Numbered from the stretch's first letter, positions 31,083 to 59,247 are shown. The stretch: DNA of 64,000 nucleotides from Rebecca billardiae RCC1528 (GCA_965240325.2 OZ251235.1:2046001-2110000); one strand, 5' to 3'. The notes: generated by a model from the sequence alone, not told the origin. Numbers and translations: made by a program.

Positions 31083-31361
31083 TATATTAGTCGCGTCGTA
31101 GTACCGTTAATGATTCTGATGCAGCCGCGTTACGAGTGCCATTCCCGCAGTATGCCGCGCCGCTGCTGTGACGATCGACTCACGACTCTGTCGGACCGAG
31201 TGAGCGACTGGCACGGCGTGCCGACCGACACTGACATCACACGTAAGTCATCGGCGGAGTAACGTTTCGCAAGCTAATAACGCTTCATGAGTGCAGTCAT
31301 CGCACTCGTTGCCGGCCTGCCGCGCTGGCTGAGCTGGACCGCCCACTGCACTTGTTCGGGC

Positions 31362-32854: not shown

Positions 32855-33789
32855 GTCGACGGCGACGAGTCTACGACCACGAGGGCGTGCACGGGTACGA
32901 TGGCGGAAGCAATGGCGACGATGGCGGCTCCTCACCAGAACCCCAGCCCCCAAGGCTTGAGGTCCAGTAAGGTCTGGCGTTTGCCACTGGCGACTGCACA
33001 CGGCAACAGGGGCGTTTGCGCCCTGTTGTCGTGTGCACACTGGGGCGCAAAAGGGGTCACCCTCAGGGGGTTTCGCACTGCTGTTGCCGTGTGCACCGGC
33101 CCGCTGTGGCCGTGCACACGGCAACAGGGCGCAAACGGCCCTGTTGCCGTGTGCAGGCGTGCATGGCTTGCGATGGCAGCCAGCCGTCAGCAGGGCGCCA
33201 CGCCCACTGTTCGTTGGTAGGCTGGCCCGATGGCGTCGCGGAGCTCACGCGTACGGGGGAGGAGGGCATCGACGAGGAGACGACCAAGGGCGAGAAGCAG
33301 CAGGGGGCACGCAGCACGGGGCTCGGAGCATGCCGCGAGCACGCGTGCCTCCACACCGTCGCACATCAACCTTGCTCGTAGCTGTGCGCTGTGCTGCCAC
33401 TCATCTCACCATCGCCCATGCTACGGGCGCGGCCGGGTGGTGGGCATCTACCTGTCGGCGCAGCACTGGCACCGGTGGTCGCCAGACACTCCTCGACTTG
33501 CTCTGCGCGTCACAGCAAGGAGACGGCAGCGGCACAGCTGTGTGAGCTCGCAGATGAAGTGCTCCTCTGCTTTGCGAGGCTGAGAGGCTGAGCACGCGTG
33601 GCGAGCGCTGGCATTCCCCCGCATTCATGAGACCAACAGGTACATAGCCGTGCCCAGGAGCGCAGGACCAACCGCCGGGTGCTGCTTCAAACACCTGCGC
33701 CCCACTCTGCCGGCAGAATGAGGGGCGCTCTACTCTATGCTGCACGCGGCAGCAGCAGCTGGGCCGCTGGGATGGTCCTGCACGGATGA

Positions 33790-35360
33790 CGGCGGTCGCC
33801 GCGGCTGACAGCTTGGTGTCACTGGTTCGAAGGGCCTGGACGACGGACGCGCCGAGCGTGGTGACGCTGCTCGATGCGCCCACGGCACTGCCAAGCGCGC
33901 TGGAGCCGCTGCCTCGAGCACTACTGTGCCCGCGCCCAGCTTGGGCAGCAGCAGCTGCGCTCAACTCCACGCCGCGTGCCGTGGCAGCAGCAGGGATGGT
34001 GCCACGGCGGCCGGCGGCGGTCGACGGAGCTGTCGGCTCGGCGGTGCACGCCCGAGGGGCCTGGGCGCTGGGCGCACCGAACGCGGTGCCGCTGCTCGCC
34101 TCGCCCATGGCGCTGGAGCCGCTGCCATCCGACGCTGCTGCGCCCGCGCCCAGCTTGGGCAGCAGCGGCTGCGCTCGACTCCGCGCAGAGTGCGGCGGCA
34201 GCAGCAGGGATGGTGCTACGGTGGGCGACGACGGTCGCTAGAGCTGAAAGCTCGGCGGTGCGCGCCCGAGGGGCGTAGGCGCTGGACGCACCGAACGCGG
34301 TGCCGCTGCTCGCCTCGCCCATGGCGCTCGAGCCGCTGCCATCCGACGCTGCTGCGCACGCGCCAAGCTTGGGCAGCAGCGGCTGCGCTCGACTCCGCGC
34401 AGAGTGCGGCGGCAGCAGCAGGGATGGTGCTACAGTGGGCGACGACGGTCGCTAGAGCTGAAAGCTCGGCGGTGCGCGCCCGAGGGGCCTGGGTGGTGGG
34501 CGCACCGAACGCGGTGCCGCTGCTCGCCTCGCCCATGGCGCTCGAGCCGCTGCCATCCGACGCTGCTGCGCACGCGCCAAGCTTGGGCAGCAGCGGCTGC
34601 GCTCGACTCCGCGCAGAGTGCGGCGGCAGCAGCAGGGATGGTGCTACGGTGGGCGACGACGGTCGCTAGAGCTGAAAGCTCGGCGGTGCGCGCCTGAGGG
34701 GCCTGGGCGCTGGGCGCACCGAACGCGGTGCCGCTGCTCGCCTCGCCCATGGCGCTGGAGCCGCTGCCATCCGACGCTGCTGCGCCCGCGCCAAGCTTGG
34801 GCAGCAGCGGCTGCGCTCGACTCCGCGCAGAGTGCGGCGGCAGCAGCAGGGATGGTGCCACGGCGGGCGGCGGCGGTCGACGGAGCTGTCAGCTCGGTGG
34901 TGCACGTCCGAGGGGCGTAGGCGCTGGACGCACCGAACGCGGTGCCGCTGCTCGCCTCGCCCATGGCGCTGGAGCCGCTGCCATCCGACGCTGCTGCGCC
35001 CGCGCCAAGCTTGGGCAGCAGCGGCTGCGCTCGACTCCGCGCCGCGTGGGGCGGCAGCAGCAGGGATGGTGCTACGGTGGGCGACGACGGTCGCTAGAGC
35101 TGAAAGCTCGGCGGTGTGCGCCTGAGGGGCCTGGGCGGTGGGTGCATTGAGCGCGCTGACGCCTCTCGCCTCGCCCGGCGCGCTCGAGCCGCTGCCATCC
35201 GATGCTGCCGCGCCCGCGCCCTGTCGCGCCGAGTGCGGCTGCAGCATCAGGGATGGCGCCACGGCGGGCGGGCGGCGGTGCATGCAGCTAGCAGCTCGGT
35301 GCTGCACGCGCGAGGGGCCTGGGCGGCAGACGCGCGCAATGCAGTGACGCTGATGCACGC
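33790..35360 (+). repeat. 214-bp GC-rich satellite array 1 (~7 units)
   Basis: Identical motifs recur every 214 bp (e.g. ORF starts 34322, 34536, 34964). Confidence 0.95.
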
Positions 35361-36129
35361 GTCAGGCGCGCTGGCCAGCCCCCGGAGCTGTTGCTACGAC
35401 ACTTCTTCTGTCCTGCTGCGAGCCGAGCCGCCAGCAGGTTCCGGGGCGGCGGGCAATGCCGGTCAGCTCATATTCATAAGGCCGGCGGCGCAGACCAGTC
35501 GTAGCCCGGCAGGTAGGCGATGCAGAAGTTATCAGCAGCATATCATGCATCGTCATCACTACATCAGCATCCGCCTATAGACGAGTACTACGTAGTATAG
35601 AACTGCTCTTTATCCGACTAGCCGTTCAGAGCGCGCGCAGTATATACTCCGACTATATACCGGTCGATGCATTATAGCCAGCCCCGGGGCGGCGGCTGTC
35701 CGACACTCTGCCGTCATGTGCGTATATAAGTGACTCTTACTCCACCTAGCGGTCTATCCGGATCGGTACCCTGGCGGCGGTGTTGTCGTCTGTCCGCCGT
35801 CACAGCCTGACTCGCGCGCGTAGCTAGTCACTTATCAGTGATGTGATGGTCTCGTCGTCTGCGTCCGGACCGTGTCGACGACAAGTCGTGCTGGGCCCGG
35901 CGGCTCACAGTGTAATAAGTTAGTAGTAGCTAACTCATATCAATGCAAGAGCATCAGTAGTGAGCAGCAGCAGTAGCAGCTCGACTGCTGGCGTCATCAC
36001 CGTGCTACACTCCGGCGCGACACGGTCACGGTCAGCTGGTCAGCATCAGTCCGTATACTTACGCCGGGACCGTAGTACTGTAGTTGAGTACGTAGTATAC
36101 GTAGTTTTAACGACGCGACCGGTCGGCGC

Positions 36130-38760
36130 GCGTGCCAAGCAGCACTCAGCACCGCCCGACCACCGCCGCCGGCCTGGCCGTGGCACCTCCCTGCTGCTAC
36201 CACCGCATGCGGCGCGAAGCCTCCGGAGCGCAGCTGCTGCCAGGCCTGCCAGCTGCAGCCGTGCAGCGGCGCCGGGGCGCGGGCGCAGCGGGCATCGGAT
36301 GGCAGAGGCTCGAGCGCGCTACGGAACGAGGCGAGCGGCTACACCGCGCTCGGTGCGTCCAGCGCCCACGCCTCTCGGGTGGGCACTGCCAAGCTTTCAG
36401 CTGCTGCGGCCGCCCGCCGTGGCACCATCCCTGCTGCTGCTGCCGCACGCGGCGCGGAGTCGAGCGCTGCTGCTGCTGCCCTGGCCGGGCGCGGGCGCAG
36501 CAGCACCGGATGGCAGCGGCTCCAGCGCTATGGGCGAGGCGAGCAGCGGCACCGCGCTCGGTGCGTCCAGCGCCCACGCCCCTCGGGCGTGCACCGCCGA
36601 GCTGCCGGCTGCAGCAACCGCAGCCGCCCGCCGTGCCACCATCCCTGCTGCTGCTGCCGCACGCGGTGCGGAGTCGAGCGCAGCCGCTGCTGCCCAAGCT
36701 GGGCGCGGGCGCAGCAGCGTCGGATGGCAGCGGCTCCAGCGCCATGGGCGAGGCGAGCAGCGGCACCACGCTCGGTGCGCCCAGCGCCCAGGCCCCTCGG
36801 GCGTGCGCTGCCGAGCTTCCAGCTGCGTCGACCGCCGCCGCCCGCCGTGGCACCATCCCTGCTGCTGCCGTCGCACGCGGCGCGGAGTCAGGCGCGGCTG
36901 CTGCTGCCCAAGCTGGGCGCGGGTGCAGCAGCATCGGATGGCAGCGGCTCCAGCGCGCTGCGGGAGGCGAGCGGCGATGGCGCGCTCAGCGCGTCCGCAG
37001 CACAAGCCCCTCGGGCGTGCGCCGCCGAGCTTCCAGCTGCGTCGACCGCCGCCGCCCGCCGTGGCACCATCCCTGCTGCTGCCGCCGCACGCGGCGCGGA
37101 GTCAGGCGCGGCTGCTGCTGCCCAAGCTGGGCGCGGGTGCAGCAGCATCGGATGGCAGCGGCTCGAGCGCGCTGCGGGAGGCCAGCGGGGACACCGCGCT
37201 CGGTGCGTCCAACGACCAGGCCCCTCGGGCGCACACCGCCGAGCTTTCAGCTCCGTCGACCGCCGCCGCCCGCCGTGGCACCATCCCTGCTGCTGCCGCC
37301 GCACTCTGCGCGGAGTCGAGCGCAGCTGCTGCTGCCCAAGCTGGGCGCAAGCGCAGCAGCGTCGGATGGCAGGGCTCCAGCGCGCTGCGGGAGGCGAGCG
37401 GCGATGGCGCGCTCAGCGCGTCTGCAGCCCAGGCCCCTCGGGCGTGCGCCGCCGAGCTGCCGGCTGCAGCAACCGCCGCCGCCCACAGTGGCACCATCCC
37501 TGCTGCTGCTGCCGCACGCGGCGCGGAGTCGAGCGCCGCTGCTGCTGCTGCCCCAGCTGGGCGTGGGCGCACCAGCACCGGATGGCAGCGGCTCGAGCGC
37601 CATGGGCGAGGCGAGCAGTGGCACCGCGCTCGGTGCGTCCAGCGCCCACGCCCCTCGGGCGCACACCGCCGAGCTTTCAGCTCCAGCGACCCACGCCGCC
37701 CGCCGTGGCACCATCCCTGCTGCTGCCCCCGCACTCGGCGCGGAGTCGAGCGCAGCCGCTGCTGCCCAAGCTTGGCGCGGGCGCAGCAGCGTCGGATGGC
37801 AGAGGCTCGAGCGCCATGGGCGAGGCGAGCAGCGGCACCGCGTTCGGTGCGCCCAGCGCCCAGGCCCCTCGGGCGCACACAGCCGAGCTTTCAGCTCCAG
37901 CGACCGCCGCCGCCCACCGTGGCACCATCCCTGCTGCTGCTGCCGCACGCGGCGCGGAGTCTAGCGCAGCCGCTGCTGCCCAAGCTTGGCGCGGGCGCAG
38001 CAGCGTCGGATCGCAGCGGCTCGAGCGCCATGGGCGAGGCGAGCAGCGGCACCGCGTTCGGTGCGCCCACCACCCAGGCCCCTCGGGCGCACACCGCCGA
38101 GCTTTCAGCTCTAGCGACCGTCGTCGCCCACCGTAGCACCATCCCTGCTGCTGCCGCCGCACGCGGCGCGGAGTCGAGCGCAGCCGCTGCTGCCCAAGCT
38201 GGGCGCGGGCGCAGCAGCGTCGGATGGCAGCGGCTCCAGCGCGCTGCGGGAGGCGAGCAGTGACACCGCGCTCGGTGCATCCAATGCCCGGGCCCCTCGG
38301 GCGCGCACCGCCGAGCTGACAGCTGCGCCGACCCACGCCGCCCGCCATGGCACCATCCCTGCTGCTGCAGCCAATGCGGCGCGGAGTCAAGTGCAGCTGC
38401 AGCTGGGCCCCAGCTGGGCGCGGGCACAGCAGCACCAGATGGCAGCGGCTCCAGCGCGCTGGGCAGTGCCGTGGTCGTGTGGAGCAATGTCACCGCGCTC
38501 GGCGCGTCCATCGACGAGGCCCCTCGAGCGAGCGACACCGAGCTGTCATCTGCGGCGAAAGCCGTCATCCGCCGCGGGACCATTCCAGCAGCTGCTGCCG
38601 CATGCAGCGCAGACTCGAGCGTGGCTGCCGCTGGTGTTGGCGGCCCGGATGGGCGCGGGTGCAGCATCATCAGGTGCCCGCGACCCCATCGCGGCGGGCG
38701 CGATGGGCCAGGTCGCTGCGTTTGGCGCGCCATTGCCCAGGCCGTTCAAGCGAGCACCAC
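36130..38760 (-). repeat. 214-bp satellite array 2 (~12 units, inverted)
   Basis: Reverse complement of the array 1 unit at ~214-bp period. Confidence 0.95.
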
Positions 38761-39680
38761 CGAGCTGTTAGTTGGAGCAACTGCTGCCGCCCGTCATGAT
38801 ACTGTACGTACTGCTGCTGCAGCATCAACAGCGCCGCTGTTACCAGCAGCGCTGCGCTCGTGTATCCGAAGCAGCACCGCATTGATGGTCCTGCGGTCTG
38901 AGTAGGGGAGTATGCCAGTAGCTCGCATGTACCTGGAGTGCAGTCCATGCCTGTACTGCCTCGCCGAGTACTACTAGAGTAGTAGGACCTCATGTGCTCA
39001 CGCAGCTGAGCCGCTGCCGTCTCCTTGCTGTGACGCGCAGAGCAAGTCGAGGAGTGTCTGGCGACCACCGGTGCCAGTGCTGCGCCGACAGGTATATGCC
39101 CACCACCCGGCCGCGCCCGTAGCATGGGCGATGGTAAGATGAGTGGCAGCACAGCGCACAGCTACGAGCAAGGTTGATGTGCGACGGTGTGGAGGCACGC
39201 GTGCTCGCGGCATGCTCCGAGCCCCGTGCTGCGTGCCCCCTGCTGCTTCTCGCCCTTGGTCATCTCCTCGTCGATGCCCTCCTCCCCCGTACGCGTGAGC
39301 TCCGCGACGCCATCGGGCCAGCCTACCAACGAACAGTGGGCGTGGCGCCCTGCTGACGGCTGGCTGCCATCGCAAGCCATGCACGCCTGCACACGGCAAC
39401 AGGGCCGTTTGCGCCCTGTTGCCGTGTGCACGGCCACAGCGGGCCGGTGCACACGGCAACAGCAGTGCGAAACCCCCTGAGGGTGACCCCTTTTGCGCCC
39501 CAGTGTGCACACGACAACAGGGCGCAAACGCCCCTGTTGCCGTGTGCAGTCGCCAGTGGCAAACGCCAAACCTGGCTGTGAGGTCAGGTGCAAGCCGGCC
39601 AGTCCGGTCGTCGTCGGAAAATCGATGGCGTCGGCGGCCGAGCTCGTTTGAATCCGGCTCGCGCTTTTGCTCGGGGCAGC

Positions 39681-42065
39681 ATGGTGCCCAGCCAGGCGCG
39701 CTGGGTGCCTGCGAGCATGCTGGGCGAGCCACCCGCCCCGCTCGTGTCGCACACCGCGACGCTGTGGCGCGACAGGTCCATCATCATCATCGGCGGCGGC
39801 CGGCACACGCGCTCGTCGAGCGATGTCGGTCTGTGGCACATGTCTGCGGCCGTGCACGCGCTCGAGCTCGAGGCGATGCGCTGGGCGCGGCATGAGGTGG
39901 GCGGCGACGAGTTCGTGGGCCGACGTGGCCACTGCGCCGTGCTCTTCGCGCACGCGGACGCCATCGTCGTCTTCGGAGGCGTCGACTCGCACGGCCCGAG
40001 CGGACACGAGCGCACTCGGTGTGACGTGAGCGTGCTTGCGCTCTCGGCGGATGGGCCGTGGACGTGGCGCACCTTCGACGCGTGCGCGAGCTCGCCCTCG
40101 CCCCGGCGCGGCCACTGCGGCTGGCTCTCGCACGACGGCGCCTCGATGCTCGTCTTCGGCGGCTTCTGCGCGCACGGCGCGCACGCCGGCGAGCCGATCG
40201 CCATTGGCTGGCACGATGCGCAGCTGCACGCGCTGCGCGCCGAGTCGGTCCTTGGGCGTGCGGCGAGTCCGGGCGCGCGGCCGGCGTGGGCGCGGCTCGA
40301 GACGACGGGTGAGGCGCCGCTCGTCGCGCTCGCGACCGTCGCGCTCACCCACGACCGCGCCCACGCCGTGCTCTGCGGAGGCATCCACCAGCGCGCGGCG
40401 GACCGTTTTCGCTGCACGGTTGCGGTGCTCGAGCAGCGCTCGCTGGCGTGGTCGCGGGTGCTCGTGCCCGGGCGCATGCCGGCGCGGTACTCTGCGGCCG
40501 CGGCGTTCGTCGGGGATACGCTGCTCCTCTTCGGCGGCACGGATCTGCCCATGTTCGAGAGCGAGCTCGCGCGCCCCGACCACGCGGACATGCGCGCGCT
40601 CGAGCTGGGCGCGGAGCTCCGGGCGGTGCCAGCAGCCGCAGGCGCCGCCGCCTCGGGGGCTGGGGCCGAGGGTGAGGCGGCGCCCTGCTGGGTGCAGCTG
40701 GACAGGCGGATGGCGCCGCCGCCGCCGCCGCCGGGCGCGGGGTACGCGCCGCACGACGCGCCTGAGCCAGGGGGCGCGCGCTCGCGCGCGGCTGAGGCTT
40801 CAGCCGACGCGCCGGCCGAGCCTGCCTCTGACGCGCCTCAGCTCGCCGAGGACGCACCGCTGCAGCCCGCCCTGACGCTCGAGCTGGGCGGGCGTGTGTA
40901 CGCGGCAGGCAGCCGCGACGCCGCGCCCTCGCCGCGTAACGGGATGACGCTCACCGCGGTGCGCGGCGGCGCGACGCTCGTCGTCGTGGGCGGGGGCGTC
41001 TTCCGCGCCGAAGGAGGTGAGTACTTTGACGAGGTGTGGCTCTTCCACATCGGTCCGGACACCGGACTTTCCCGCGCCGGACCCACCGGACCGGAGCCGT
41101 TGGCGCGCGGGCCGGCGGCCGAAGGGGGCGCGCTCTCGACGGGCGGCGGCCGCGCGCCGCCTCACGCCGACGGCGGGCTGAGCGAGGACCTCGGCCGCCT
41201 GCTCGCGAGCGCGCGCGGCGCGGATGTTTGCTTTGAGCTGGACCGGGGCGAGCGCGTGTGCGCGCACGCCCTCGTGCTGGGCGCGCGCTGCGACTACTTC
41301 CGAGCGCTGCTCAGCGGCGGGTTTGGGGAGGCCTGCGCCGGCGGCTCGGGCGCCGAGCGTGTCGTGCGAGTGCCGCACGTGCCCGCGCGCGCGTTCCGCG
41401 CTGCGCTGCGCTTCCTGTACACGGGGCGACTGCCCGGGCTCGAGGGCGGCGCGGAGGGCGCGGGCGCAGACTGCGGCGCGGAGGGCGCGGGCGCAGACTG
41501 CGGCGCGGAGGGCGCGGGCGCAGACTCGGGCACTGGCGCGGCTGCGGAGGCGGCGTGGGCGCAGCTCGCCGCCGAGCTGCTCATGCTCGGCGACATGTGG
41601 ACCTGCGCCGCGCTGCGCGCCGCGGTGCTCGCCCGCATCGAGCGCGCGCTCGGCGCGCGGCACCTCAGCCTCGCGCGCGCGCTCGAGATCGGCCGCGCGA
41701 CGGGCGCCACCGAGCTCCTGACCCTCGCCGCCGAGCGTCTCGTCGACGCGCTGCTCTTTCCCGTCCCGCGCGCGGGCGGCGCCGGCTGCGCCGCCGACGG
41801 CGACGAGGCCGACGCCGCCTCCTCCGACTTGACGCCGGGCGGGGGCAGTGGCGAGGCAGAGGAGGGCGCGCGCGGCGCGCGGCGCGGTGCCGCCGCGGTG
41901 CTGCAGCCGGCGACGCGTGGCGGCGGCGACGCGGACACGCAGCTCGTCCGCAGCGCGGGCCTGGCCGCCGGCGACGTGGGCGACAGGGCCTTTGCTGACG
42001 AGCTGGAGGCTGCGCTGCGGCGTATGGGCTTCCGCCCGACGACGGGCGCAGGTGGCTGCGAATGA
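39681..42065 (+). CDS. Kelch-repeat + C-terminal BTB/POZ protein (LZTR1-like architecture)
   Basis: Repeated R.GH/VVFGG/W kelch motifs; ADVCFELD..AHALVLGARCDYFRALL..FRAALRFLYTG. Confidence 0.9.
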   Translation: MVPSQARWVPASMLGEPPAPLVSHTATLWRDRSIIIIGGGRHTRSSSDVGLWHMSAAVHALELEAMRWARHEVGGDEFVGRRGHCAVLFAHADAIVVFGGVDSHGPSGHERTRCDVSVLALSADGPWTWRTFDACASSPSPRRGHCGWLSHDGASMLVFGGFCAHGAHAGEPIAIGWHDAQLHALRAESVLGRAASPGARPAWARLETTGEAPLVALATVALTHDRAHAVLCGGIHQRAADRFRCTVAVLEQRSLAWSRVLVPGRMPARYSAAAAFVGDTLLLFGGTDLPMFESELARPDHADMRALELGAELRAVPAAAGAAASGAGAEGEAAPCWVQLDRRMAPPPPPPGAGYAPHDAPEPGGARSRAAEASADAPAEPASDAPQLAEDAPLQPALTLELGGRVYAAGSRDAAPSPRNGMTLTAVRGGATLVVVGGGVFRAEGGEYFDEVWLFHIGPDTGLSRAGPTGPEPLARGPAAEGGALSTGGGRAPPHADGGLSEDLGRLLASARGADVCFELDRGERVCAHALVLGARCDYFRALLSGGFGEACAGGSGAERVVRVPHVPARAFRAALRFLYTGRLPGLEGGAEGAGADCGAEGAGADCGAEGAGADSGTGAAAEAAWAQLAAELLMLGDMWTCAALRAAVLARIERALGARHLSLARALEIGRATGATELLTLAAERLVDALLFPVPRAGGAGCAADGDEADAASSDLTPGGGSGEAEEGARGARRGAAAVLQPATRGGGDADTQLVRSAGLAAGDVGDRAFADELEAALRRMGFRPTTGAGGCE

Positions 42066-42526
42066 GCACGACTGCTACACGGTGCTGAACAGAATGATGG
42101 CGGCCAAATGTCTACCGTTTACGGGCGCCGCCGCGCGAAGCGAGCCGGCGGCCTAGTAAGAACCCTGAGCCGGCGCGGACGGGCACTGCTGGCAGGTGCG
42201 CAAGCGCCCAATACATGCTCCGCAGACACCGCTCACCAGCCCCTGCCACCTCGTCTCCTCGTCTGTTATACTCATACTGCCCGCGACACGCGAACATGTC
42301 CGCCGATCGTCATCAGACTCATCAGTGTATCATATATATAGCCTGTATCATCATCTTTGAATCCGCTCGTCCGGCCGGGCCACTCTCTGAGTCTGACTCT
42401 CTCAGACTCAGACTCTCTGTCGCCGAGTTGTGAAGGCGAAGACGGACCGGTCAAAGAGGGGGGCACGCATGTGCGTCGGCGAGGCCTGCTTGCCAGCCCG
42501 CGCGGTGCAGCCGCCGCCGCCTGCGC

Positions 42527-43330: not shown

Positions 43331-43903
43331 CCTCAAACGCTCGCGTGGCCGAACGACTGCCGCGGCGCGGCCCGCCGCAGGAACGGGCGTACGATTGGAC
43401 GCTCAGGGAGATCAGAATGAGAATCGCACCAATCATGGCCTTTTCCTCCGCGACTCGTCATGGCCGTTTAGCGAGCTTTGATTCCTCGTCCGCTCGAATT
43501 CGGCGCTCATCAGTCACTCCACGACTGCCCATGATTCATTCACGAAGAGACGACGACGAACGACGACGACGGGCCCACCACCGCAACTGGCGAGTCTATT
43601 CATGAGTGATTGGGAGACGCTGGCGCCATCTGCTGATGTCGGCACAGCGCGCTGCTTCTCCGTGAGCAGCTGAGTCAAGTCAGACAGTCCACTTTCCCGA
43701 GACCGGGCGTGTCGCGGCTGTCGCGGCCGCGGCTGCACAGCCACGCGCGCGCGCTCACGAGCTCCACGGGGGCGCACACTCCAGCGGCTCAGCCGCCCCC
43801 GAGTGGCCGCCTCGGATGCAAGCCGCAGCCCCACACACACCATGGTCATCCTTGCGGCCGGTGCAGCTCGGTGTGTCGCGCCGCGGCCACTGGTCGTTCT
43901 TCT

Positions 43904-46900
43904 TCACATCGCGAGCGCGCGCGGCGTCTGCTTGCGCGCCGACATGGGCAGCGCAGACGGCGTCTGCTGGTGCGCGGACGGGAGGGTCTTGATGCTGCTC
44001 AGCCGACGCGATCGGCGCACCTGCGGGCGAGCGGCGCGTGGTGACGTGCACAGGGCGCGCGGAGGCGTTAGTGGCTTGTGCGCGGCGCGGTCAGCATGGC
44101 CGCCGCGCGATGCCGTGGCACGGGCTCGGCGCGCGCGGTGCGCGCACCGGCGACTGGAGGCCATCGTCAAACTCGAGGAACGAGCCGAGGGTCGGCGCTC
44201 CCTGCTCAGCCGACGGCGCGCGGCCGGCGGGCAGCCCGGGGGCGGCGTGCAGCAGCCGCGCGACGATCGCGAGCCCGCCGAGCGCCGCGAGCACGATGGC
44301 GGTGGCGCCAAAGCCGTTGGCCGCCTCCGCGGCGCTGGTTGTCGCGGGCGGCGCGAGCGTGGCCTCCGCCTCGGTCCACGCGGTGACGGTGCACGCGCCC
44401 TCGGCGCTCTTCTCGCAGATGGCCACCCCGCCGCTCACGTCCGCCGCCGCATCGTCCGGCATGCCGTAAGGGCCGCCTGCCAGCTCAGCCAGAGGCTCGG
44501 CGGCGGCCTCCGCCTCCGCCGTGGGCTGCGGCTGGGGCGGCGGCGGCGCGCGCGCGAGGTTTGCCGCGACGCCGTCCAAGAAGGCCTTCATGGCGCTTGT
44601 CATCTCCACGGCGCTCAGCTCGGCGGCGAGCGGCTGCTGCGGGCTCTCGGCCGGCGGCGCCGCCGGCTCGGGATCCGAGGCCGAGGCCGCGGCGTCGGCC
44701 GGCGCCGGCGCGGCCGCAGCCTTCGGCTCCAGCTCGGCGGCGACGTGAGCATCGACGGCGCCGTCTGGCACGGGAGGAGCGCTCTCGTCCGCCGAGGGCG
44801 CCGCGCTCTCGTCCTCGTCAGCGGCGTGCCGGTCCGGCTTGGAGCGCTCGAGCGCATCGATCAGCCCCTCCACGGTGCCTCCTGCCGTCTGCTCGGCAGC
44901 CGCGGCGGCGCTCAGGTGCCGGGCCAGTGCCGGAGGCATGACGCCGTTGAGGACGGCGGCGAGGAGCGGGCCGGGCACGAGGCTGGTCGCGGCGGCCCAC
45001 GCGGTCGGCACCTCGCGCGCGCGAGGCGCGGCCGGCGGCGCGTGCAGCACCGCCCCTGCGACGAGCAGCGCGAGCGCGAGCGCGAGAGAAGGCAGGCTGG
45101 ACCGAGTGGCACGCGCGGTACCGCCCGCGGGCTTGGTCGGCGCGGCCGCGGGCTGGGCGCGCGCCTTGGGCTCGGGCGCGGCCGCGGGCGCCGCCGCGTA
45201 GTCGGGCGAGTGCGTCGAGTACGACGGCGGGTTGAGCGTCGGCGGGGTGGCCTCCTCCGAGCCCTCGACCGTCCGGATGAGCGCGCGAGGCGTCGGCAGC
45301 AGCGGGGTCGGGGTCGGCCCGGCGGCGCGCATCGACGATGGTACGCTGCTGGCGGGCGTGCCCGCGCGCGCGGAGGCGGGCGTGCGCTCGAGCGTCTTCT
45401 CGGGCTTGAAGAAGCCGTGCGCGAGCGCGCCCGCCAGCGTGCTGTCGCCACCCGCCTCGGCCGCGCCGCCATGGCCGGCGAGCGCGCTCGCGACAGCCAG
45501 GTCCAGCGGCAGCGTCGGCTGCGTAGCCGTGGCGATGGCGGAGCTGGCGTGCAGCGCAGAGTGCGCGAGCTCGAGCTTGTCCTCGGCGGAGGCGGGCGCG
45601 GCGCGCGCCACGCTGGCGCTCTCCGCCTCATGGAACCACGGCGTCGCCTCCGCCACCTCGTGCGCCCACGGGGTCGCCTCGCCAGCCGGCGCGGGCGGCG
45701 CGGCCGCGGCGCTCATCTTGCTCGGCTGCGGCGGCGCGGGTTGCGCGGCGGCGAGCGCGGCGGCGGGCTCGGTCTTGGTGGCGCTGCCCTGCTTCTTGGG
45801 CTGCGCGCTTGCGCCGTGCGGGCTGTCCTCCGCCAGCCGGTTGCTCTCGCCCAGCATCGCGCGGATCTCGAGGAAGTTCGAGAGCTCGGCCGTGGGCACG
45901 CGCGCCGAGAGCTCGGCAGCGAGATCGCCGAGATCGAGCTCGGGCGCGAGCTCGGGCGCGACGCCGGCCATGGGCGTGTTCTGCGGCGCGGGCGGCGCGT
46001 TGCCCGGGCTGAAGACCATCACGCCCGGCGGCGCGGGCGACGCCTCCATCGCCGCGGCCGCGGCCTCCAGCTTGGCCCGGCGCAGCGAGGCGGGCGTCGG
46101 GCGCGCGCGCGCCCCCTCGGCTGACGCGGGCGTGCCTCGCGCTGGTGTTGTGCTGCCCTCGGGCAGAGGGCAGTGCGCCTTGAGCACGGCGAGCGTCTCG
46201 CAGACCGCGTCGCGCACGGGCTTGGCCGGATCGGTGCGCAGCTTCCACATCAGCTTGTGCAGCTGCCGCCGCGTGACGCTCGCGCCCGCGGCGGGCGCGT
46301 GCTCGGCGCCCGCGCCCGCCGAGACGGCAGACGACGGCGTCGAGCCGCGCGGCTTGGTGTCGGGCGTGGCGTGCGGGTCGTTCTCGTCGGCGCCGTCGTC
46401 CGCGCCGCCGGCGAGCGCGATCAGCTCGCCGTGCCGCGCCGCCACCGCGCCGATCAGCTCGACGGCGCTCTTCTTGGCGTGCCAGTCGTCGGTGCCCGTC
46501 ATGCCGCGCCGCTCGCGGCCCAGACCGTACGCGTCTTGCACCGCGCGCGCCGCGAGCGGGGCGAAGGCGTCCGGGGCGATGGCGGAGATGGCGCGGACGA
46601 CGCCGAAGACGTTGGCGGGGACGAGGGTCTGCTTCGCGCGCGCGAGCGAGAGCAGCTTGTGCACGAGCACGGGCAGCGCGTTCTCGACGAGCGGCGAGGG
46701 CGCCATGGAGACGACTTCCACGATGCACGCGCACGCGCCCACCTGCTGCTCGCGGATCTGGCAGCCGAGCGCGGCGCTGAGCGGGGCGAGGATGGGCGCG
46801 AGCCGCACGCCCTGCCACTGCACGGGCGTCTCGTCCGCGCGCGGCGTCGCCGGCCACTCGAGGCACACGCCGAGCGCGCCGAACGTGGAGGCGGCCGCGC

Positions 46901-47454
46901 GGTGCACGCGCGCGTCGTTTGTGCACAGGGCCTTGAGGAGACTGCGCGCGCGGCGCGTGGCGGAGCGGGCGCAGGGCGGCGCGGGGCGTGAGCGCGGTAC
47001 GCGCGGCCCGTGGTACGCGCACACTCACCGCCGCGCACTCCGCGCCCGCGCGCGACGCGCGCGCGCACCAGTGCACGACGTGCGGCAGCGCGGGCGCAAG
47101 GTGCGACGTCTTGTGAAGGCGGACGGCGTCTCCGATCAGCTCGATGCACGCGACGGCGGAAGGGCCACGCGCCTCGGGGAGCTGGCGGAGGAGGTTCTTG
47201 ATGATCATGTTCAGCTCGTGCACGATCTGCCGCTCGTTCGGCTCCGTCGCGAGCGTGGCGAGCGTCTCCTGGAGCTCACCGGTCGCGACGCGGCGCGTGT
47301 CGTCGCACGCGAGCCGCTGCACGAGCTCGAGCATCGCGATCTCGTGCTCGCGCTTGGGGGTGAGGCCGATCACGCGCGATGGCGTGCCGTGCTCTCGCGG
47401 CTGCGACGCTCCGTCGCGTTGGGGGCTCACGGCGCGGCCGTGCGCGGTCGGCAT
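43904..47454 (-). CDS. TORTIFOLIA1/SPIRAL2-like HEAT/ARM protein with long Ala/Pro linker and two hydrophobic segments
   Basis: LVQRLACDDTRRVATGEL, LAPALPHVV, DWHAKKSA and D.AKPVRDAV resemble the SPR2 N-terminal domain. Introns 47068-46942 and 44147-44021 (CACTAAC branch site). Confidence 0.7.
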
Positions 47455-49239
47455 CGGGGACGGCGGGCGGGTGAAAGCGCGATCGATGCAAGGCGTGGAA
47501 GCCGGTGAGCTCCAGCTCTCACGCCCGGCTTCAAACGCCGGCCGTTTCGGCGCCGGTCGGCACGTTTGACGTTTCGACCTTTTCCCGGGCTGTCCCGGGG
47601 GAGGAGGAGAAAATTCAGACGAGTCCGGCCAGCGACAACGCCGCCTTGCCAATACGGTAGGGCGCCGGACGCAATAGGGAAGTGACGTCTGTGGGGTCAC
47701 TTCCGCTGTGCGCACGAAAGTGAGGCCCCAGAGGTCACTTCCCTTCCCCCTCTTATTGGGGCATTTCTTCTAAGTAGCAAAGTCCGGACGCCCAGCTGGC
47801 GACCGGTGGGTGGCCACGATGGCGGCCACGCCCGCCACGTGGTGTGGGCGGGACCTTGCAAGATCAATCAAGGCGGATACAAGTGGCGGAGACTTTGATC
47901 ATCGGCTAGCCCCCGTGCAGTGTGCTCTTAGCTACACACTTATCAGAGCTGGCTCGTCTCCTCCCTCAAGACCCGCTGCTCTGTCTAGATTCTGGGTGAG
48001 CATTGCAGCATTCGCCTGATCCTCATGCGAGGGACGACGACAACTGGCGAGCCGCTAGGCTGCTCAACGGTGACGAAGGCAGCAGTCGAGCTGCCAAGCA
48101 AAGGTCGACGCAGTGTACCTGTGCATGCGATGCGCGGGGCAGCGCGCGCCATCGTATCGCCCGTCGCCGTCGGCCACGCAGCTGCTACCGGCCAGCTGAC
48201 ATGATGACGCAGGGCCAGCTGAGCAGCTGCTGTGCCGAGGATCACATGGGTGCCAAGGGCTGGCAGGTGGCGTCATCACGGCGTATGCTGCGTGTGCTGC
48301 TCTCACTTACCGTGGTTGACCGGCTGCTCTGCCAGCGCGTGCCCGTGGCTGTTGCTGGGCAGGCAACGGCGCTCCTCCAGCCCGAGACAGGCTGCGCGCG
48401 TGCTGGTGAGCAGCCAACCTGCAGCTGATGTACAGGCGGCCGCAAGCTGGCATGGCCGAGGGCACGCGGTGGCATGGTGTCTATATTAACCCACGAGCTG
48501 CCGGCCGCGCTCGCACACGCCGTGCAATCGCCTGCCGCTGCCGGGTTTGGGCACACTCGCGGGGGGGGGGCGCTCACCAGGCATTGGTCACACGCCCTCG
48601 GCGCCTCTGCCTAGCTAGCACTTGCAGACACACCGTGCGGCAGCCCAGCGGCCACCATCCGCAGCGGTGGCTGCGAACTGGCCGAAGCTACGGGCGCGCG
48701 GCTGCATACTCTCCTTATTGGAACGTGCGCTGTCAAGTGTGATCGAGCTGACGGCGGACACGCCGGTCGGTGCTGTGTTCTTGCGCTCTCGGGGCCGGTG
48801 GTCATCAGGCGGTGGATACGCAGCCCGCCGCCACGGTGCGCCAGCGCCGCAGCCGACGACTGCGGCTGCGACCAGTGTCGCGCAGCGGCGGCTGAGGGCT
48901 GTCGCGGCGGATGCGGCGACGGCGGCGGCGGCGGCGTGGTCTGGGCATGGGCTGCCGACGCCACGCGCGCACGCTGAGCGCGTGCAGCTCAGGCACAGCG
49001 ACTTCGCGCGCTTATGACCGGCTGTCACCAGGCGGTGGACACGCGGTGCGCCGCCACGGTGCGCCGGCGCGGCCGCAACCGACTGCGGCCGCCGACTGCG
49101 GCCGCGACCAGCGTCGCGCAGCGGCAGCTGAGGGCTGTCGGGGCGGAGCGCGCGTGGCTGCGCGGCGGCGTGGTCTGGGTATGGGCTGCCGACGCTGCGT
49201 GCGCACAGGCGTGCGCACCCAGACCGGCGACGCTGATCG

Positions 49240-50950
49240 ACGCGCCCATCGCGCTGGAGCCGCTGTCATCCGACGCTGCTGTGCCCGCGCCCAGCAGCGC
49301 TCGACTCCGCGCCCAGTGCGGCGGCAGCAGCAGGGATGGTGCCACGGCGGGCGGCGGGCGCTGATGCAGCTGACGGCTCGGCTGTGCGCGCCCGAGGGGC
49401 CTGGGCGACGGGCGCGCCGAGCGCGGTGACGCCTCTCGCCTCGCCCGTCGCGCTGGAGCCGCTGTCATCCGACGCTGCTGCGCCCGCGCCCAGCTTGGGC
49501 AGCAGCGGCTGCGCTCGACTCCGCGCCGCGTGCGGCGGCAGCAGCAGGGATGGTGCCACGGCGGGCGGCGGCGGTCGACGGAGCTGCCAGCTCGGCGGTG
49601 CGCGCCCGAGGGGCGTGGGCGCTGGACGCACCGAGCGCGGTGCCGCTGCTCGCCTCGCCCATCGCGCTGGAGCCGCTGCCATCCGACGCTGCTGCGCCCG
49701 CGCCCAGCTTGGGCAGCAGCGGCTGCGCTCGACTCCGCGCCGCGTGCGGCGGCAGCAGCAGGGATGGTGCCACGGCGGGCGGCGGCGGTCGACGGAGCTG
49801 CCAGCTCGGCGGCGCGCGCCCGAGGGGCGTGGGCGCTGGACGCACCGAGCGCGGTGCCGCTGCTCGCCTCGCCCATCGCGCTGGAGCCGCTGCCATCCGA
49901 CGCTGCTGCGCCCGCGCCCAGCTTGGGCAGCAGCGGCTGCGCTCGACTCCGCGCCGCGTGCGGCGGCAGCAGCAGGGATGGTGCCACGGCGGGCGGCGGC
50001 GGTCGACGGAGCTGTCAGCTCGGCGGTGTGCGCCCGAGGGGCCTGGGGGGTGGGCGCACCGAACGCGGTGCCGCTGCTCGCCTCGCCCATCGCGCTGGAG
50101 CCGCTGCCATCCGACGCTGCTGCGCCCGCGCCCAGCTTGGGCAGCAGCGGCTGCGCTCGACTCCGCGCCGCGTGCGGCGGCAGCAGCAGGGATGGTGCCA
50201 CGGCGGGCGGCGGCGGTCGACGGAGCTGTCAGCTCGGCGGTGCGCGCCCGAGGGGCGTGGGCGCTGGACGCACCGAGCGCGGTGCCGCTGCTCGCCTCGC
50301 CCATCGCGCTGGAGCCGCTGCCATCCGACGCTGCTGCGCCCGCGCCAAGCTTGGGCAGCAGCGGCTGCGCTCGACTCCGCGCCGCGTGCGGCGGCAGCAG
50401 CAGGGATGGTGCCACGGCGGGCGACGGGCGCTGATGCAGCTGGCGGCTCGGCGGTGCGCGCCCGAGGGACCTGGGCGACGGGCGCGCCGAGCGCGGTGAC
50501 GCCTCTCGCCTCGCCCATCGCGCTGGAGCCGCTGCCATCCGACGCTGCTGTGCCCGCGCCCAGCTTGGGCAGCAGCAGCAGCGCTCGACTCCGCGCCGCG
50601 TGCGGTGGCAGCAGCAGGGATGGTGCCACGGCGGGCGACGGGCGCTGATGCAGCTGGCGGCTCGGCGGTGCGCGCCCGAGGGGCCTGGGCGACGGGCGCG
50701 CCGAGCGCGGTGACGCCTCTCGCCTCGCCCATCGCGCTGGAGCCGCTGCCATCCGACGCTGCTGTGCCCGCGCCCAGCTTGGGCAGCAGCAGCAGCGCTC
50801 GACTCCGCGCCGCGTGCGGCGGCAGCAGCAGGGATGGTGCCACGGCGGGCGACGGGCGCTGATGCAGCTGGCGGCTCGGCGGTGCGCGCCCGAGGGGCCT
50901 GGGCGACGGACGCGCCGAGGGCGATGACGCCGCCTGCTTCGCCCAGCGCG
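49240..50950 (+). repeat. 214-bp satellite array 3 (~8 units), preceded by two ~223-bp degenerate repeats (48800-49250)
   Basis: Same unit as arrays 1 and 2; period 214 (49987 to 50201; 50538 to 50752). Confidence 0.95.
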
Positions 50951-51400
50951 CCGAGGAGCAGCTGCTGCCGTTACTCTGACGAGTCTACGTCTACTGAGAT
51001 GATGGCGTCTTGCAGTACGACAGCATCATATACATCTATATATATATGCTGATATATAGCTATGATGCGCGCAGAGTTCTGAGCAGCTCATGCCGCTGCA
51101 ATGACTCTCAGATCCGCGCTGCGGGCCTGACAAGGATGATGATGCGCGGCCTGCGGCCTGCTGATCGGAGGCGATGACGCCGATGCTGACGATGACGTGC
51201 GCCCGGCCTGTCGATACTCGATGGCGGATCGGACGTCCGAGTCATCATATCGATATCGATATCATCATAATATAATTAATGACGCGATGCTGACACGGCT
51301 GACTGCTATCATCAGCATATCGATCAGCATCGTCAGGATGACGAACATATCAGTCAGCGACAGCAAGTGGCCTGCGGTGCTCATATATATATATATAGCT

Positions 51401-51432
<32 letters not shown>

Positions 51433-51768
51433 CTCTCTAGTCTCTCTCTCTCTCTCTCTGGTAAGTAATATATAGTATGGACCAGTCGACGGACTGCTAG
51501 CTGCTGCTGCTGATGACGACGGTCGTCGTCCGCAGCAGATGTCATCAGCTGCAGCTATTAGTATATACGTACCAGTACGTACAGTATATACATTAGATTT
51601 CTAGTGCCGTCTCGGGGACGCACCGCTGTCCGCTCCGCCGTGTGATCCGATCCGCCGACCGTCAGTGGCGACGCGCGCGAGTATAAGCTGCGCGCGCGCG
51701 TGCGCTATACTAGCCGGCTGAGTCTCAGTGATGTCCGGTCAGTCAGCAGCATATATATACTGCTCGCC

Positions 51769-51887
<119 letters not shown>

Positions 51888-51942
51888 TGTCAGTGCGTGT
51901 CATTGATGCTCGCGCAGAGCTCATGGTCGTGGCTCGGTCACG

Positions 51943-52278
51943 CGATGCAGCACATTGCGCTGGTGCCAGGCCGCCACGCGCATGGCCGGACATGGTAACG
52001 CGTTGTACCATGAGTGCACTCGACTGCACAAAGGAGCAGCGGGCCCAGAATCCTACGCATAGCGAGCACGCACGCGCGCAGAGCTCAGGGTGGTGGCCCG
52101 GTCACTCGTCGGATGACGTGAGAGAGGGAGAAGCACACGATGCAGCACATTGTGCTGGTGCCAGGCCGCCGCGCGCATGGCCGGACATGGTAACGCGTTG
52201 TACCATGAGTGCACTCGACTGCACAAAGGAGCAGCGGGCCCAGAACCCTACGCATAGCGAGCATGCACGCGCGCGCAG
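51943..52278. repeat. Direct repeat, two ~138-bp copies 195 bp apart
   Basis: CGATGCAGCACATTG...CACGCGCGCAG at ~51943 and ~52138. Confidence 0.9.
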
Positions 52279-54269
52279 TGCTGAAGGTCGTAGCCGTCGG
52301 GTGATGACACGAGAGAGAGAGGGAAGCCGGCAAGCATGTGCGCATCTGTTGGTTGAGGCGTGGGCCATGGGCGCATCTTGCTTCAAACACGCACGTATAA
52401 GCACTCGTCGCCGCCTCCCCGGTCTCGTTCGAACCACAAATGAAGTGGAGACTGCAGGCAGCGAAGAGACGACTGACAACTTCACGCCGGGGATATGACG
52501 GGATGCTGATGGGTGCCATGGTAGCAACCAAGAGTTCAAGGTTGTCCTGCCATTGCAAACGCTTACAGTACGTGTGGTGTGCATGCCCAAGTGCCAGGCA
52601 CGATGGATCAGTGTCGCTGGCGCCATGCCGCTTGCTTGGTCAAGCTGCACGTCGATCCACACGCGCATGCGCACGCGTCGGGCGAGCGCGCGAGAGACCA
52701 TCTGGTTGACGCCAAGCTCAAACATGCACGCTGAGAGCTGCAGAGTTTCAGCTCATGAGGTCCGCAATCCGCATCCTCTTTGAGCACTTGCATCGCCATT
52801 GAGCTCGGGGGAGTCGCGTCCTGGCAACTCGACGCAGGCGATCGGCATCGCTCTCGACACGGGCCCAAAAGTCGGCGGCTTCGCGCCAGGATTCTCATTT
52901 CATCTCGTCATTCTCATCATTCTCATCATTCCCGGCCCGAATTTTGTTCTTCCCGTCTAGCTCTTTCATCGATTTTCGTCCGCGCCCCTGCCGGCGGGTG
53001 CAAAACACCCTCGCCATCACGCGCGCCGACGGCTCGCCGGCAGAGATCGCATGACGGTCACTCGATGATCAGGCGCGCCTGGTCGCTCACCGCTGAGGGC
53101 TCGCCGTGCAATCGTGCCTGAGAGTGACCTAGGGCTGCCTGAGAGACGGATGACATGGTCAGTAGAGGGATGCCCGAATATTGGATCGAGCAGAATAGTA
53201 GGACGCGAGTTACGACTTATGCTCGAGTAGATAAGATCACTGATCACCTGGGCAATCCAAGGGCGCCACCAATAGACTGCTCTCGATGCCCAGCTGCTCG
53301 ACACAGCAGCTGCCCGCATCCAGGTAGACTTTCGGTGTCTCCAGCATCAGAGCCTCAGATTCACACCAGCAATAGCTGTTCTGACCGCCGGCAAAGCAAG
53401 CAATGGCTGAATGGCACTCTCGGCTTGATCAGGATCACTCCGATCAGTCTTACTACTAGGCTGAGATTCCGACGACGATCCCACTAGCCGAAGACGACTG
53501 TGTGGACTACGCGTGAGGAATCAATCTGCGCCAATCAGCGCGTGCCAATGCCTGCTCCCCCAGAGCAAGCAGCCAAGAAGTCTCGCATGTCACGGCTGCA
53601 ATCACTAAGTGAGCGACTCCAAGAACTCACGTTGAGCCCGAAAGTCTCACTCTGGCAGCTGCCGGATCGATCTCCATGATGCTAGGCAGCCCTTTGAAAA
53701 CCATTCCTTTACGAGAAGCATTCCTGAACGAGGCGTTGAACGAAGGTCGTCTACTGCCATTCCATTGCATCCGCGCATTACAGCAGCAGTGAAGAAGTGG
53801 TCGCCACCGTCACGACGAGCAGCGCCTGTGTGTGACGAACCAGCTGCCCGCCAAGGCACACATGGCGATACTCGTCTCTCGGCAGGAGGAGAGATGCTGT
53901 AGGAGGGGACCACCGCTGTGCGGGAATCGGCACACTCCTCGGGCGTGTGGGATCATCCTGTTGTGGCCTGCCCAATCTCGCTGGGAAAGACATGATGGGC
54001 GATGGCGGCTCCGGCGACCATTTATTGCAGCAGAATCTTCCGTAAATACGGGCGAGGTACGCGAATCTTCAGAAGCCGCTAGCCGATAAACTACACTGGA
54101 ACAAGGGCGGTACTGGAAGCTCCCGCAAATACGATCAGAGTACGCAGAACTTCAGAAGCCCGCTGGCCAATAGTCGGTCGGAAGCCTTCGCAAATACAAT
54201 TCAGTGTACACATCCTGAACCAGAAGAGTATCAGAAGCCTTCACAACCGAGGGCGGGGCTTGACGAGAG

Positions 54270-56200
54270 CCTGCCGCCCTTGCCGCCACCTTCACAGTCG
54301 CAGTCGCTGACACCGAGTTCGCAGGTGCCCTCACCGACGCCCTCGCTGCAGCCCTGATCGCATCCGCCGCCCCGCTGCCACCGCAAACGTCGTCGCCACC
54401 GCCCGCGCAACCGCCCTCGCCCTGGCCGCCTACGCGGCCGCCTCCGAGCCCGTCGCCCGTGAGCCCGATTCAGGCCGCGCCGCCCTCGCCACTGCCGCCA
54501 CCACCGCTGCCCGTGGCGTCGCCAACCTCGTCGCAATCTCTGCTACTGCCACCCTCGTCGTTCTTGCCACCACCTCCGTCGCTCTCGCCCTCGTCAGGCC
54601 GCACTTTTGCTATGCTACCACCGAGCCCGCCGCAGCAGCTGCCGCGCCGCCGCACCAACACCGCCGCCCAGGCTGCCGCCCTTCCCGCCGCCTCGGCGAC
54701 CGCTGGCCGCGGCGACGCTCTCGCCACAACCTCAATGACTGCCACCCCCGTCGCTGCCACCCTCGCCACCTCGCCAGCGCCAGCGCCCCCGCCCTCGTCC
54801 TCGCAAGCGTTGCCGGGCCTGCCACCGCAGCTGCCGGGCCACAACCACCGTCGCCCAGGCCGCTGCCCTCACCGCCGCTGCCGCATCCGCTGACTGCACC
54901 GCTGCCGCCCTCGCCGCCAATTCAGTCGCCACCCCCATCACCGCCCTAACCACCGCCAGCCTCGCCGCGCTCGCCCTCGCCAGCGCCGCCTACGACGCTG
55001 CCGCCGAGCCCGGCACCCGAGCTGCCGCCGCCGCCGCCGCTGCCGCCGCCGCAGCCTAGGCCGCCGCCCTCGCCGCCGCCGCCGCGTCCGCGGGCCGTGC
55101 CGCCCCCGCCCTCGCCACTGCCTTGGGTGCCACCGCCCTCGCCGCCCTCACTGCCGCCAGCGTTGCCGCGCTCCCCAGCGCCGCCTATGCAGGCCGGGCC
55201 CGCCACCCCAGCTGCCGCCGGAGCAGCAGCTGGCGTCGCCCAGGCCGCCGCCCTCGCCGCCGCCGCCGCGCCCGCTTGCCGCGCCGCCGACGCCACCGCC
55301 ACCGCCTCCGTTGCCGCCGCCCTCGCCGCCCTCACCGCCGCCAGCGTTGCCGCGCTCCCCCTCGTCAGCGCCGCCTACGCCGCCGCCGCCGAGCCCGCCA
55401 CCCCAGCTGCAGCCGCCGCCGCCGCCGCTGCCGCAGCCACAACCCAGGCCGCCGCCCTTGCCGCCGCCGCCGCGTCTGCGGGCCGTGCCGCCGCAGCCCT
55501 CGCCACTGCCTCGGGTGCCACCGCCCTCGCCCTCACTGCCGCCCTCACTGCCGCCAGCGTTGCCGCGCTCCCCAGCGCCGCCTATGCAGGCCGGGCCCGC
55601 CACCCCAGCTGCCGCCGGAGCAGCAGCTGGCGTCGCCCAGGCCGCCGCCCTCGCCGCCGCCGCCGCGCCCGCTTGCCGCGCCGCCGACGCCACCGCCACC
55701 GCCTCCGTTGCCGCCGCCCTCGCCGCCCTCACCGCCGCCAGCGTTGCCGCGCTCGCCCTCGCCCGCGCCGCCTACGCCGCCGCCGCCGAGCCCGCCACCC
55801 CAGCTGCAGCCGCCGGCGCCATCGCCGCCCAGGCCGCTGCCCTCGTCACCGTCGCCGCCCCCGCCTCCACTGCCCTTGGGTGGCGCCGCCGCCCTCGTCG
55901 CAGTCTCAGTTGGTGCCGCCCTCACCGCACTCGCTACCGCCTCCTTCGCTCTCGCCCTTGTCAGCGCCACCCTCTCGCTGCCGCCGAGCCTGCCGCCGCA
56001 GCTGCCGCCACCGCCGCCACCGCCGCCCGGGCCGCCACCCTCGCAGCCGCCGCCGCGTCCTCTGGCCGCGTTGCCGCCGCCCTCGCCGCCGCATCCGTCA
56101 CCGTCACTCTCGCTGCCATCACCGCCGCCAGCACTGCCGCCCTCGCCGCTGCCCTAGCTGCCGCCCTCGCCGCGTACACCGCTGCCTCCGTCACCTCCGC
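54270..56200 (+). repeat. C-rich degenerate minisatellite (184/213-bp units, 397-bp higher-order duplication); Pro/Ser-rich in one frame but frameshifted
   Basis: CGTTGCCGCGCTC at 55161, 55345, 55558 and 55742. Confidence 0.75.
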
Positions 56201-56755
56201 CCTCTTTGTCGTCGCTGCCGGTCCCGGCTTCCTGTCTGCCACAGCCTGGTGTGGTGTGCACGCCGCGTGCTTCCAGCTCTCGCAGATGTGGATGGCAGTC
56301 ACAATTGGGCCTACCGTACGATGCCTGCAAACGCACCCCTGAGCCAGGTGCCGCGTCGAGAAGGGCGTGGCAGCCATGCCACCCCACAGGCGGGCCGCCA
56401 TCGTGGCCGCCATCGTGGCCACCGGTCGCCAGCTGGGCGTCCGGACTTGCTACTTAGAAGATATGGCCCAATAAGGGAAGTGACCTCTGGGGCCTCACTT
56501 TCGTGCGCACAGTGGAAGTGACCCCACAGCGGTCACTTCCCTATTGCGTCCTGCGCCCAACTGGGCTGGCCTTGCGCCCTTGCTGCCTTTGCAGAGCTAC
56601 CGGACTCTCCAAACTCACGCCCGGCCGCCGAGCGACCGGCCCGGGCGGCGCTTGCAGGCTGGCGCTAAGTCGATGACAGAGTCAGAGAGAGTGTGATTGG
56701 GCGCCCGAAGACGCCAACCTCGGACGGGCGCAGACTCGCAGCGGCTGGCGAGCGC

Positions 56756-59159: not shown

Positions 59160-59164
<5 letters not shown>

Positions 59165-59247
<83 letters not shown>
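59165..59247. repeat. (AT)n microsatellite
   Basis: Direct reading. Confidence 0.95.

Follow-up and report, generated by a model that had tools for sequence, protein, structure and literature searches.

We analyzed a window of 64,000 nucleotides from the haptophyte Rebecca billardiae RCC1528 (GCA_965240325.2 OZ251235.1:2046001-2110000; 67% GC). It holds two large transposable elements, here called E1 and E2, each of which has terminal inverted repeats (TIRs) and CA..TG ends and is flanked by a target-site duplication (TSD). Both are insertions of the cut-and-paste type made with a 7-nt stagger, both lack transposase coding, and E1 is polymorphic. An earlier note on this DNA had described them as two giant foldback-like elements of one family, and a check of the sequence located all six strings quoted there in their places. 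The features in and around E1, in window coordinates, are:

31423-32854, minus strand: gene for an eIF2B-family subunit (PF01008), with its inferred start (32854) about 100 bp away from E1
32958-32964, plus strand: left TSD of E1, TGAGGTC, present as a single copy in the empty allele
32965-39578: E1, a non-autonomous foldback element of 6614 bp, polymorphic (absent from Logan contigs L006 and L007)
32965-33547, plus strand: left TIR of E1; over its outer 568 bp it is identical to the right TIR apart from positions 4, 5, 10, 317, 443 and 484
32996-33154: five copies, in both orientations, of the subterminal 14-bp motif GCACACGGCAACAG, from TIR position 32
33897-35220, plus strand: left array of a 214-bp satellite, 6.2 copies, with degenerate edges at about 33710-35350
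35400-36150: central spacer, ~750 bp, 57% GC, non-coding
36275-38464, minus strand: right array of the 214-bp satellite, 10.2 copies, inverted
38996-39578, minus strand: right TIR of E1
39579-39585, plus strand: right TSD of E1, TGAGGTC
39681-42065, plus strand: gene for a kelch-BTB protein, divergent from the eIF2B gene

Support for the junctions came from public Logan short-read contigs and covers the empty site of E1 and the right junction of E2. Two proteins of the window, the eIF2B subunit and a dehydrogenase, were present in these contigs. The eIF2B contigs (ERR14847148, ERR14847151) correspond to window 31053-32964 joined straight to 39586 onward. Because they carry a single TGAGGTC at the site of E1, with no footprint, they prove both the boundaries of E1 and its 7-bp TSD. 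Since contigs from two public runs span the site empty, E1 is a real, polymorphic insertion; it is missing from another haplotype or strain and has moved recently. Relative to the window, the contig of ERR14847148 has 10 single-nucleotide polymorphisms (SNPs) and that of ERR14847151 has 1. Because contigs show presence and not absence, the zygosity of E1 can only be inferred. In the empty allele, the start codons of the divergent eIF2B and kelch-BTB genes are only 149-205 bp apart, and E1 therefore splits a compact bidirectional promoter. With E1 in this divergent promoter of 150-200 bp, allele-specific expression is directly testable. In contig L006, nine SNPs relative to the window fall within 430 bp of the kelch-BTB gene (41012-41441) and one in the rest of that contig; the clustered SNPs are useful markers for allele-specific expression, as is a SNP at 31909 for the eIF2B gene.

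The TSDs of E1 and E2 are exactly 7 bp, and neither duplication extends past this length, which rules out an 8-bp TSD. The probability that a given 7-mer recurs by chance at a fixed place is ~1e-4. When the whole window was scanned without bias for inverted repeats bordered by any TSD of 4-10 bp, E1 and E2 were the only credible elements, and a scan for CA-N9-GGCG tips paired by a 7-bp TSD likewise returned only these two. The 7-bp TSDs and CA..TG ends reported earlier are thus exact for both elements. A non-autonomous cut-and-paste TIR transposon is expected to have a TSD of fixed length, which is seen in both, and a single-copy empty site, which was shown for E1 only. A 15-mer at 18026-18040 resembles the tip profile of E1 and E2; it was ruled out as a third element, having neither a TIR partner nor a credible TSD, and is probably chance or a relic.

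E1 fits the definition of a foldback element, as its inverted arms are long and modular and contain tandem repeats. Its arms match over 583 bp at 99% identity and over 2.4 kb at 82%, and the degenerate edges of the satellite are 72% identical between the arms. The left and right satellite arrays are not mirror images (6 vs 10 monomers). Mismatches between the arms are concentrated at the tip, with three in the first 10 bp vs three in the next 558 bp (P = 8e-5). The copies of GCACACGGCAACAG are candidate transposase-binding sites. Enrichment of snap-back palindromes in the spacers was tested and rejected.

E2 and its surroundings are arranged as follows:

44091-47454, minus strand: TORTIFOLIA1-like gene, inferred start about 190 bp from E2
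47643-47649, plus strand: left TSD of E2, GCCTTGC
47650-56568: E2, a non-autonomous TIR element of 8919 bp with short TIRs and mixed repeat cargo
47650-47830, plus strand: left TIR of E2, ~175 bp, in which the 9-bp motif GGAAGTGAC forms two inverted pairs from TIR position 29
48795-49240, plus strand: duplicated ~223-bp unit before the satellite and weakly related to it
49297-50951, plus strand: array of the 214-bp satellite, 7.7 copies, 95% matches
50960-52295: AT-richer spacer with CT and (AG)57 microsatellites and a 195-bp duplication
52300-54300: unique middle, ~2 kb, with no Pfam, Atlas or convincing phmmer match
54621-55820, plus strand: some 3 tandem copies of a GCC-rich 397-bp unit, reading as frameshifted text rich in Pro or Ala
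56402-56568, minus strand: right TIR of E2, its terminal 86 bp and junction matched by Logan contig L005
56569-56575, plus strand: right TSD of E2, GCCTTGC, the right junction also being present in the contig
56756-57673, minus strand: short-chain dehydrogenase gene, stop about 180 bp from E2

Foldback arms are absent from E2. Its TIRs (82-88% identical) enclose a patchwork of unique DNA, duplications, satellite, microsatellites and GCC-rich repeat, and its satellite forms a single array 1.5 kb inside the TIR, outside any arm. The term foldback-like, earlier applied to both elements, therefore fits E1 with its 583-bp arms at 99% identity and does not fit E2, the TIRs of which are ~175 bp long. 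The dehydrogenase contig (L005) is identical (100%) to window 56483-59189, runs through the right junction of E2 and 86 bp into the TIR, and ends exactly one base short of completing the first 31-mer common with the left TIR of E2. The contig confirms the right tip of E2. Its stopping point suggests that E2 is fixed in the sample of the contig and that no identical sister end occurs there. A polymorphic E1 and a fixed E2 agree with their TIR identities, 99% for E1 and 82-88% for E2. Exact look-ups found no contig across the left junction of E2.

Several further observations concern E2. Synteny in related algae was dropped as a substitute for an empty site, since gene order is not kept; in these algae (L009, L010, L011) the dehydrogenase gene lies head-to-head with an aldo-keto reductase gene, and the downstream neighbors are unlike those of the window. 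The reconstructed target of E2 (47633-47649 with 56576-56585) is partly palindromic (8/13 pairs), and that of E1 is not. The GCC-rich repeat reads over 54300-56200 as frameshifted text of the PPPSPPP type, and the 397-bp unit may be a captured and amplified piece of a gene for a proline-rich surface protein. A Calx-beta repeat protein was dropped as a relative of the most protein-like open reading frame (ORF) of E2, the weak phmmer match being inflated by 7 repeats.

All four tips of the two elements fit a common profile, CARYNNRGTNNGGCG. Over 15 bases the identity is 11/15 between the left tips, 12/15 between the right tips and 9/15 cross-wise, and positions 4-5 are TA at the left and CC at the right tips of both elements, as the earlier note had claimed. 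At 67% GC, the binomial probability of this similarity is ~2e-3 for the left and ~3e-4 for the right tips, for a length of 15 bases that was picked post hoc. Beyond base 15, only the satellite is common to E1 and E2. Identity over positions 16-40 is 8/25, the TIR bodies align no better than shuffled sequences, and the subterminal motifs are unrelated, their layout being alike in that both start ~30 bp inside each end. The Repbase rule assigns elements to one superfamily if their TSDs are equally long and no more than one of positions 1-11 is mismatched (PMC4455052). The TSDs of E1 and E2 are of equal length and their 15-mers are more similar than expected by chance; however, their tips agree at only 7/11 and 8/11. 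A single family, as first proposed, is therefore not upheld. We would assign E1 and E2 to two families of a single lineage, between which a passive cargo was recently exchanged.

That cargo is the satellite, the monomers of which are intermixed across E1 and E2 and are up to 97% identical, without shared flanks. The lack of shared flanks led us to drop the satellite block as a nested element. Derivation of the satellite from either TIR was dropped as well, the 214-bp unit having no similarity to the TIRs of E1 or E2, as was a structured or tRNA-derived RNA (no Rfam or ARAGORN match; fold z = +0.95). The satellite had been placed in the left arm of both elements in the same orientation; it is indeed on the plus strand in both, with the E2 array lying outside any arm. 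E1 additionally holds the reversed 10-copy array in its right arm, and the shared orientation therefore provides no independent left/right anchor.

Taken together, E1 and E2 are probably non-autonomous cut-and-paste transposons, of two families in one lineage, whose movement depends on DDE transposases acting in trans from genes outside the elements. A trans-acting enzyme that binds subterminal motifs and cuts at the tips is inferred from established TIR biology. Its catalytic core would read the shared 15-bp tip, CARYNNRGTNNGGCG, and make the 7-nt staggered cut, and a family-specific DNA-binding domain would recognize the inverted pairs of subterminal motifs, which begin ~30 bp in from each end. 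Because these motifs differ between E1 and E2 in the same layout, two related partner enzymes would be involved. The TA and CC tips would derive from parental autonomous elements whose left and right ends were imperfectly matched. The long arms of E1 may have been made and homogenized by fold-back copying or gene conversion, and the differences at its tip would survive because this copying or conversion starts just inside the tip. The 214-bp satellite would be passive cargo that elements exchange through gap repair or conversion and whose arrays change in size by unequal crossing-over.

Of the mobilizers considered, the likeliest is a haptophyte transposase that makes 7-bp TSDs, either hATv-like or of the RAG1 fold, although we put this forward with some reserve. 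hAT and RAG1 transposases share a fold, and the two kinds may constitute one putative lineage. Shanks, from Tisochrysis lutea, has a 7-bp TSD and non-identical 26-bp TIRs, is placed in the haptophyte-only hATv group of Repbase, and has many non-autonomous derivatives and recent activity (PMC10138859). The Shanks/hATv elements (Tisochrysis lutea, Chrysochromulina, Emiliania) resemble E1 and E2 in their haptophyte host, 7-bp TSD and non-identical TIRs. Shanks was compared, like the Kyakuja elements discussed below, by its 15-base tips. The Shanks tip shares the YAR-NNN-RGT register with E1 and E2, and 7/8 constrained positions agree in purine/pyrimidine class, which is a lead only.

Several points weigh against this interpretation. 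Shanks ends in TA..TA and not CA..TG, its left/right differences lie beyond position 15, its TIRs are only 26 bp long, and no foldback arms or satellite are reported for it. In positions 1-11 the Shanks tip matches E1 and E2 at 5-6/11, which is not significant even at best (6/11). The sample consists of only two elements, the route by which the foldback would arise and the satellite would move is hypothetical, and an autonomous partner was not found when the ORFs of the elements and of the window were screened by Pfam.

The absence of a transposase from E1 and E2, stated in the earlier note, was confirmed, as no Pfam transposase matched any of their 99 six-frame ORFs or the ORFs of the satellite. 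Atlas scores for the element ORFs were all <0.85. A tblastn search of viral contigs and a search with the TIR-frame ORF gave no match, results that are uninformative on longer or shorter relatives, and exact patterns of the satellite and of the TIRs of both elements had no match in metagenome or viral contigs. The sole match in GTDB (21-22 bases, in a Bacteroidales metagenome-assembled genome) was attributed to chance, 0.27 being expected. The Pavlovales loci examined showed no similarity to E1 or E2.

The asymmetry of the tips could also be functionally required, in which case the transpososome would need one TA and one CC end and selection would preserve this difference as conversion evened out the remaining sequence; we regard this as possible. 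The same difference occurs in two families with unrelated TIR bodies, and the mismatches of E1 cluster at its tip. However, the pattern would be expected without any selection if fold-back copying were primed internal to the tip, the TIRs of E2 differ at many other positions too, and the argument rests on two elements. The functionally distinct ends proposed in the earlier note were likewise drawn from two elements, and inherited imperfect parental TIRs explain them equally well. If the partner transposase does need unlike ends, this would be a new end-recognition rule for elements with 7-bp TSDs.

Membership of the P superfamily, as the earlier note had suggested in likening the elements to Galileo, appears somewhat unlikely. 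E1 and E2 would then be non-autonomous relatives of Galileo and 1360 that are moved by a P transposase with a THAP domain, with arms grown as in Galileo, that is, by tandem expansion and the recruitment of internal sequence (PMC4168063). Galileo and 1360 make 7-bp TSDs (PMC3698922) and, like E1, have long TIRs with tandem repeats (PMC4168063); transposase-less copies of Galileo reach 9 kb (PMC4168063; PMC3698922), and the number of repeats differs between their arms (PMC4168063). E1 and E2 have the 7-8-bp TSD and CA..TG ends of P elements, and both are inserted just upstream of genes. However, they differ from Galileo and 1360 in having unlike left and right tips and in their haptophyte host, and their six-frame ORFs contain no P/THAP sequence or P transposase remnant detectable by Pfam. 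Neither TSD fits the GTANTAC preference of Galileo, and the two sites available showed no common palindromic target motif. CANRG and YARNG are superfamily end signatures, and the tips do not fit CANRG. Moreover, a 7-bp TSD does not single out Galileo, since it is also made by Kyakuja and fungal hAT7 (PMC12730594) and by hATv/Shanks (PMC10138859). The 5' ends of hAT7 begin with CA (PMC12730594), so that hAT7 resembles E1 and E2 in its TSD and 5' CA and differs in being fungal.

A mobilizer other than an hATv-like or RAG1-fold, P or Kyakuja enzyme is unlikely. Equally doubtful is a reading in which E1 and E2 are non-autonomous members of an algal transposase lineage, as yet undescribed and RAG1/Transib-like in fold, that makes 7-bp TSDs and strictly needs one TA and one CC end, its foldbacks spreading the 214-bp satellite into promoters genome-wide; such a left/right end rule would be loosely like the paired signals of RAG.

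Descent from Kyakuja (KDZ), with one end copied to the other to form TIRs, is improbable. Kyakuja elements have TSDs of exactly 7 bp and CA..TG termini without TIRs (PMC12730594), their two ends are unlike, as in E1 and E2, and their listed 5' ends include AT-rich and C-rich classes at positions 4-6. The tip of Kyakuja-2_LB matches the right tip of E2 at 8/11; however, this is the best match in a set of about eleven tips and lacks significance. Indeed, none of the eleven published tips matches E1 or E2 significantly, and no Kyakuja or hAT7 tip comes within one mismatch of either over positions 1-11. In contrast to Kyakuja, which PMC12730594 describes in fungi only, both elements have TIRs, and no KDZ domain was found in either. 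The CMCT group (CACTA-Mirage-Chapaev-Transib), which has CA..TG ends with a TSD of 2-5 bp (PMC12730594), was dropped on account of the 7-bp TSD. Finally, long inverted repeats are hard to assemble and short-read contigs traverse the E1 site without E1, but an artefact of assembly, whether from palindromic chimeras of long reads or from the collapse of satellites, is very improbable, as it would not produce unlike tips or an exact 7-bp duplication on both sides, the arms of E1 are unequal in monomer number, the empty contigs differ from the window by SNPs like a second haplotype, and the right junction of E2 is supported by reads. The misassembled palindrome at E1 that the earlier note had considered is thus not supported.

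The kind of element represented here, and the architecture of E1, are already known. E1 is built like Tetris of Drosophila virilis and the longest copies of Galileo. Tetris also has an outer flanking domain, ~220-bp repeats in both arms and a non-coding middle, and its autonomous partner is unknown (PMC4079207). It differs in its TSDs (8-10 bp) and in having a stretch common to its repeat and its TIR, whereas the 214-bp unit shows no similarity to either TIR and, unlike the Tetris repeat, occurs in two TIR families. Independent origins of the foldback shape in several lineages have been discussed (PMC4079207). Since satellite-bearing foldbacks have been described in Galileo (PMC4168063) and Tetris (PMC4079207), the undescribed satellite-dispersing group envisaged earlier is not borne out; the E1 and E2 families themselves are probably unnamed in the literature searched. 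What is new is the empty allele of E1, the read-supported junction of E2, the separation of E1 and E2 into different families, and the comparisons with hATv and Kyakuja. E1, a polymorphic insertion of 6.6 kb that forms a hairpin, is a validated case of a DNA transposon active in an algal lineage that has been little studied. The presence of one satellite in two unrelated TIR families represents a route of satellite spread known mostly from flies.

Among the flanking genes, the kelch-BTB protein has as its only strong relative a protein of Diacronema lutheri (40% identical), and a relative of the short-chain dehydrogenase in Pavlovales sp. CCMP2436 matches it at 59%; the two relatives point to a Pavlovales-type haptophyte as the most likely host. 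In the remainder of the window, a six-frame Pfam search of 4000-31000 and 57800-62000 yielded a ceramidase, a weak match to CRAL/TRIO and nothing else, and the long ORFs at 8774-10114, 19687-21009, 21218-22945 and 24146-26074 matched no Pfam family. An ORF at 18193-18801 (minus strand), with no Pfam match at E 0.05, has in an adjacent frame a DGAALIAPDG-like stretch reminiscent of diadenylate-cyclase domains. Between (TA)n tracts at 18808-19368, a tandem repeat with a unit of 142-162 bp runs for about four copies and bears no relation to the 214-bp satellite. Two degenerate repeat copies, about 70% identical, occur at 7074-7783 and 26664-27253 and end in a long (TA)n run, and a 150-bp repeat pair (81%; 3700-3853 and 10028-10178) lies in AT-richer, transposon-like DNA.

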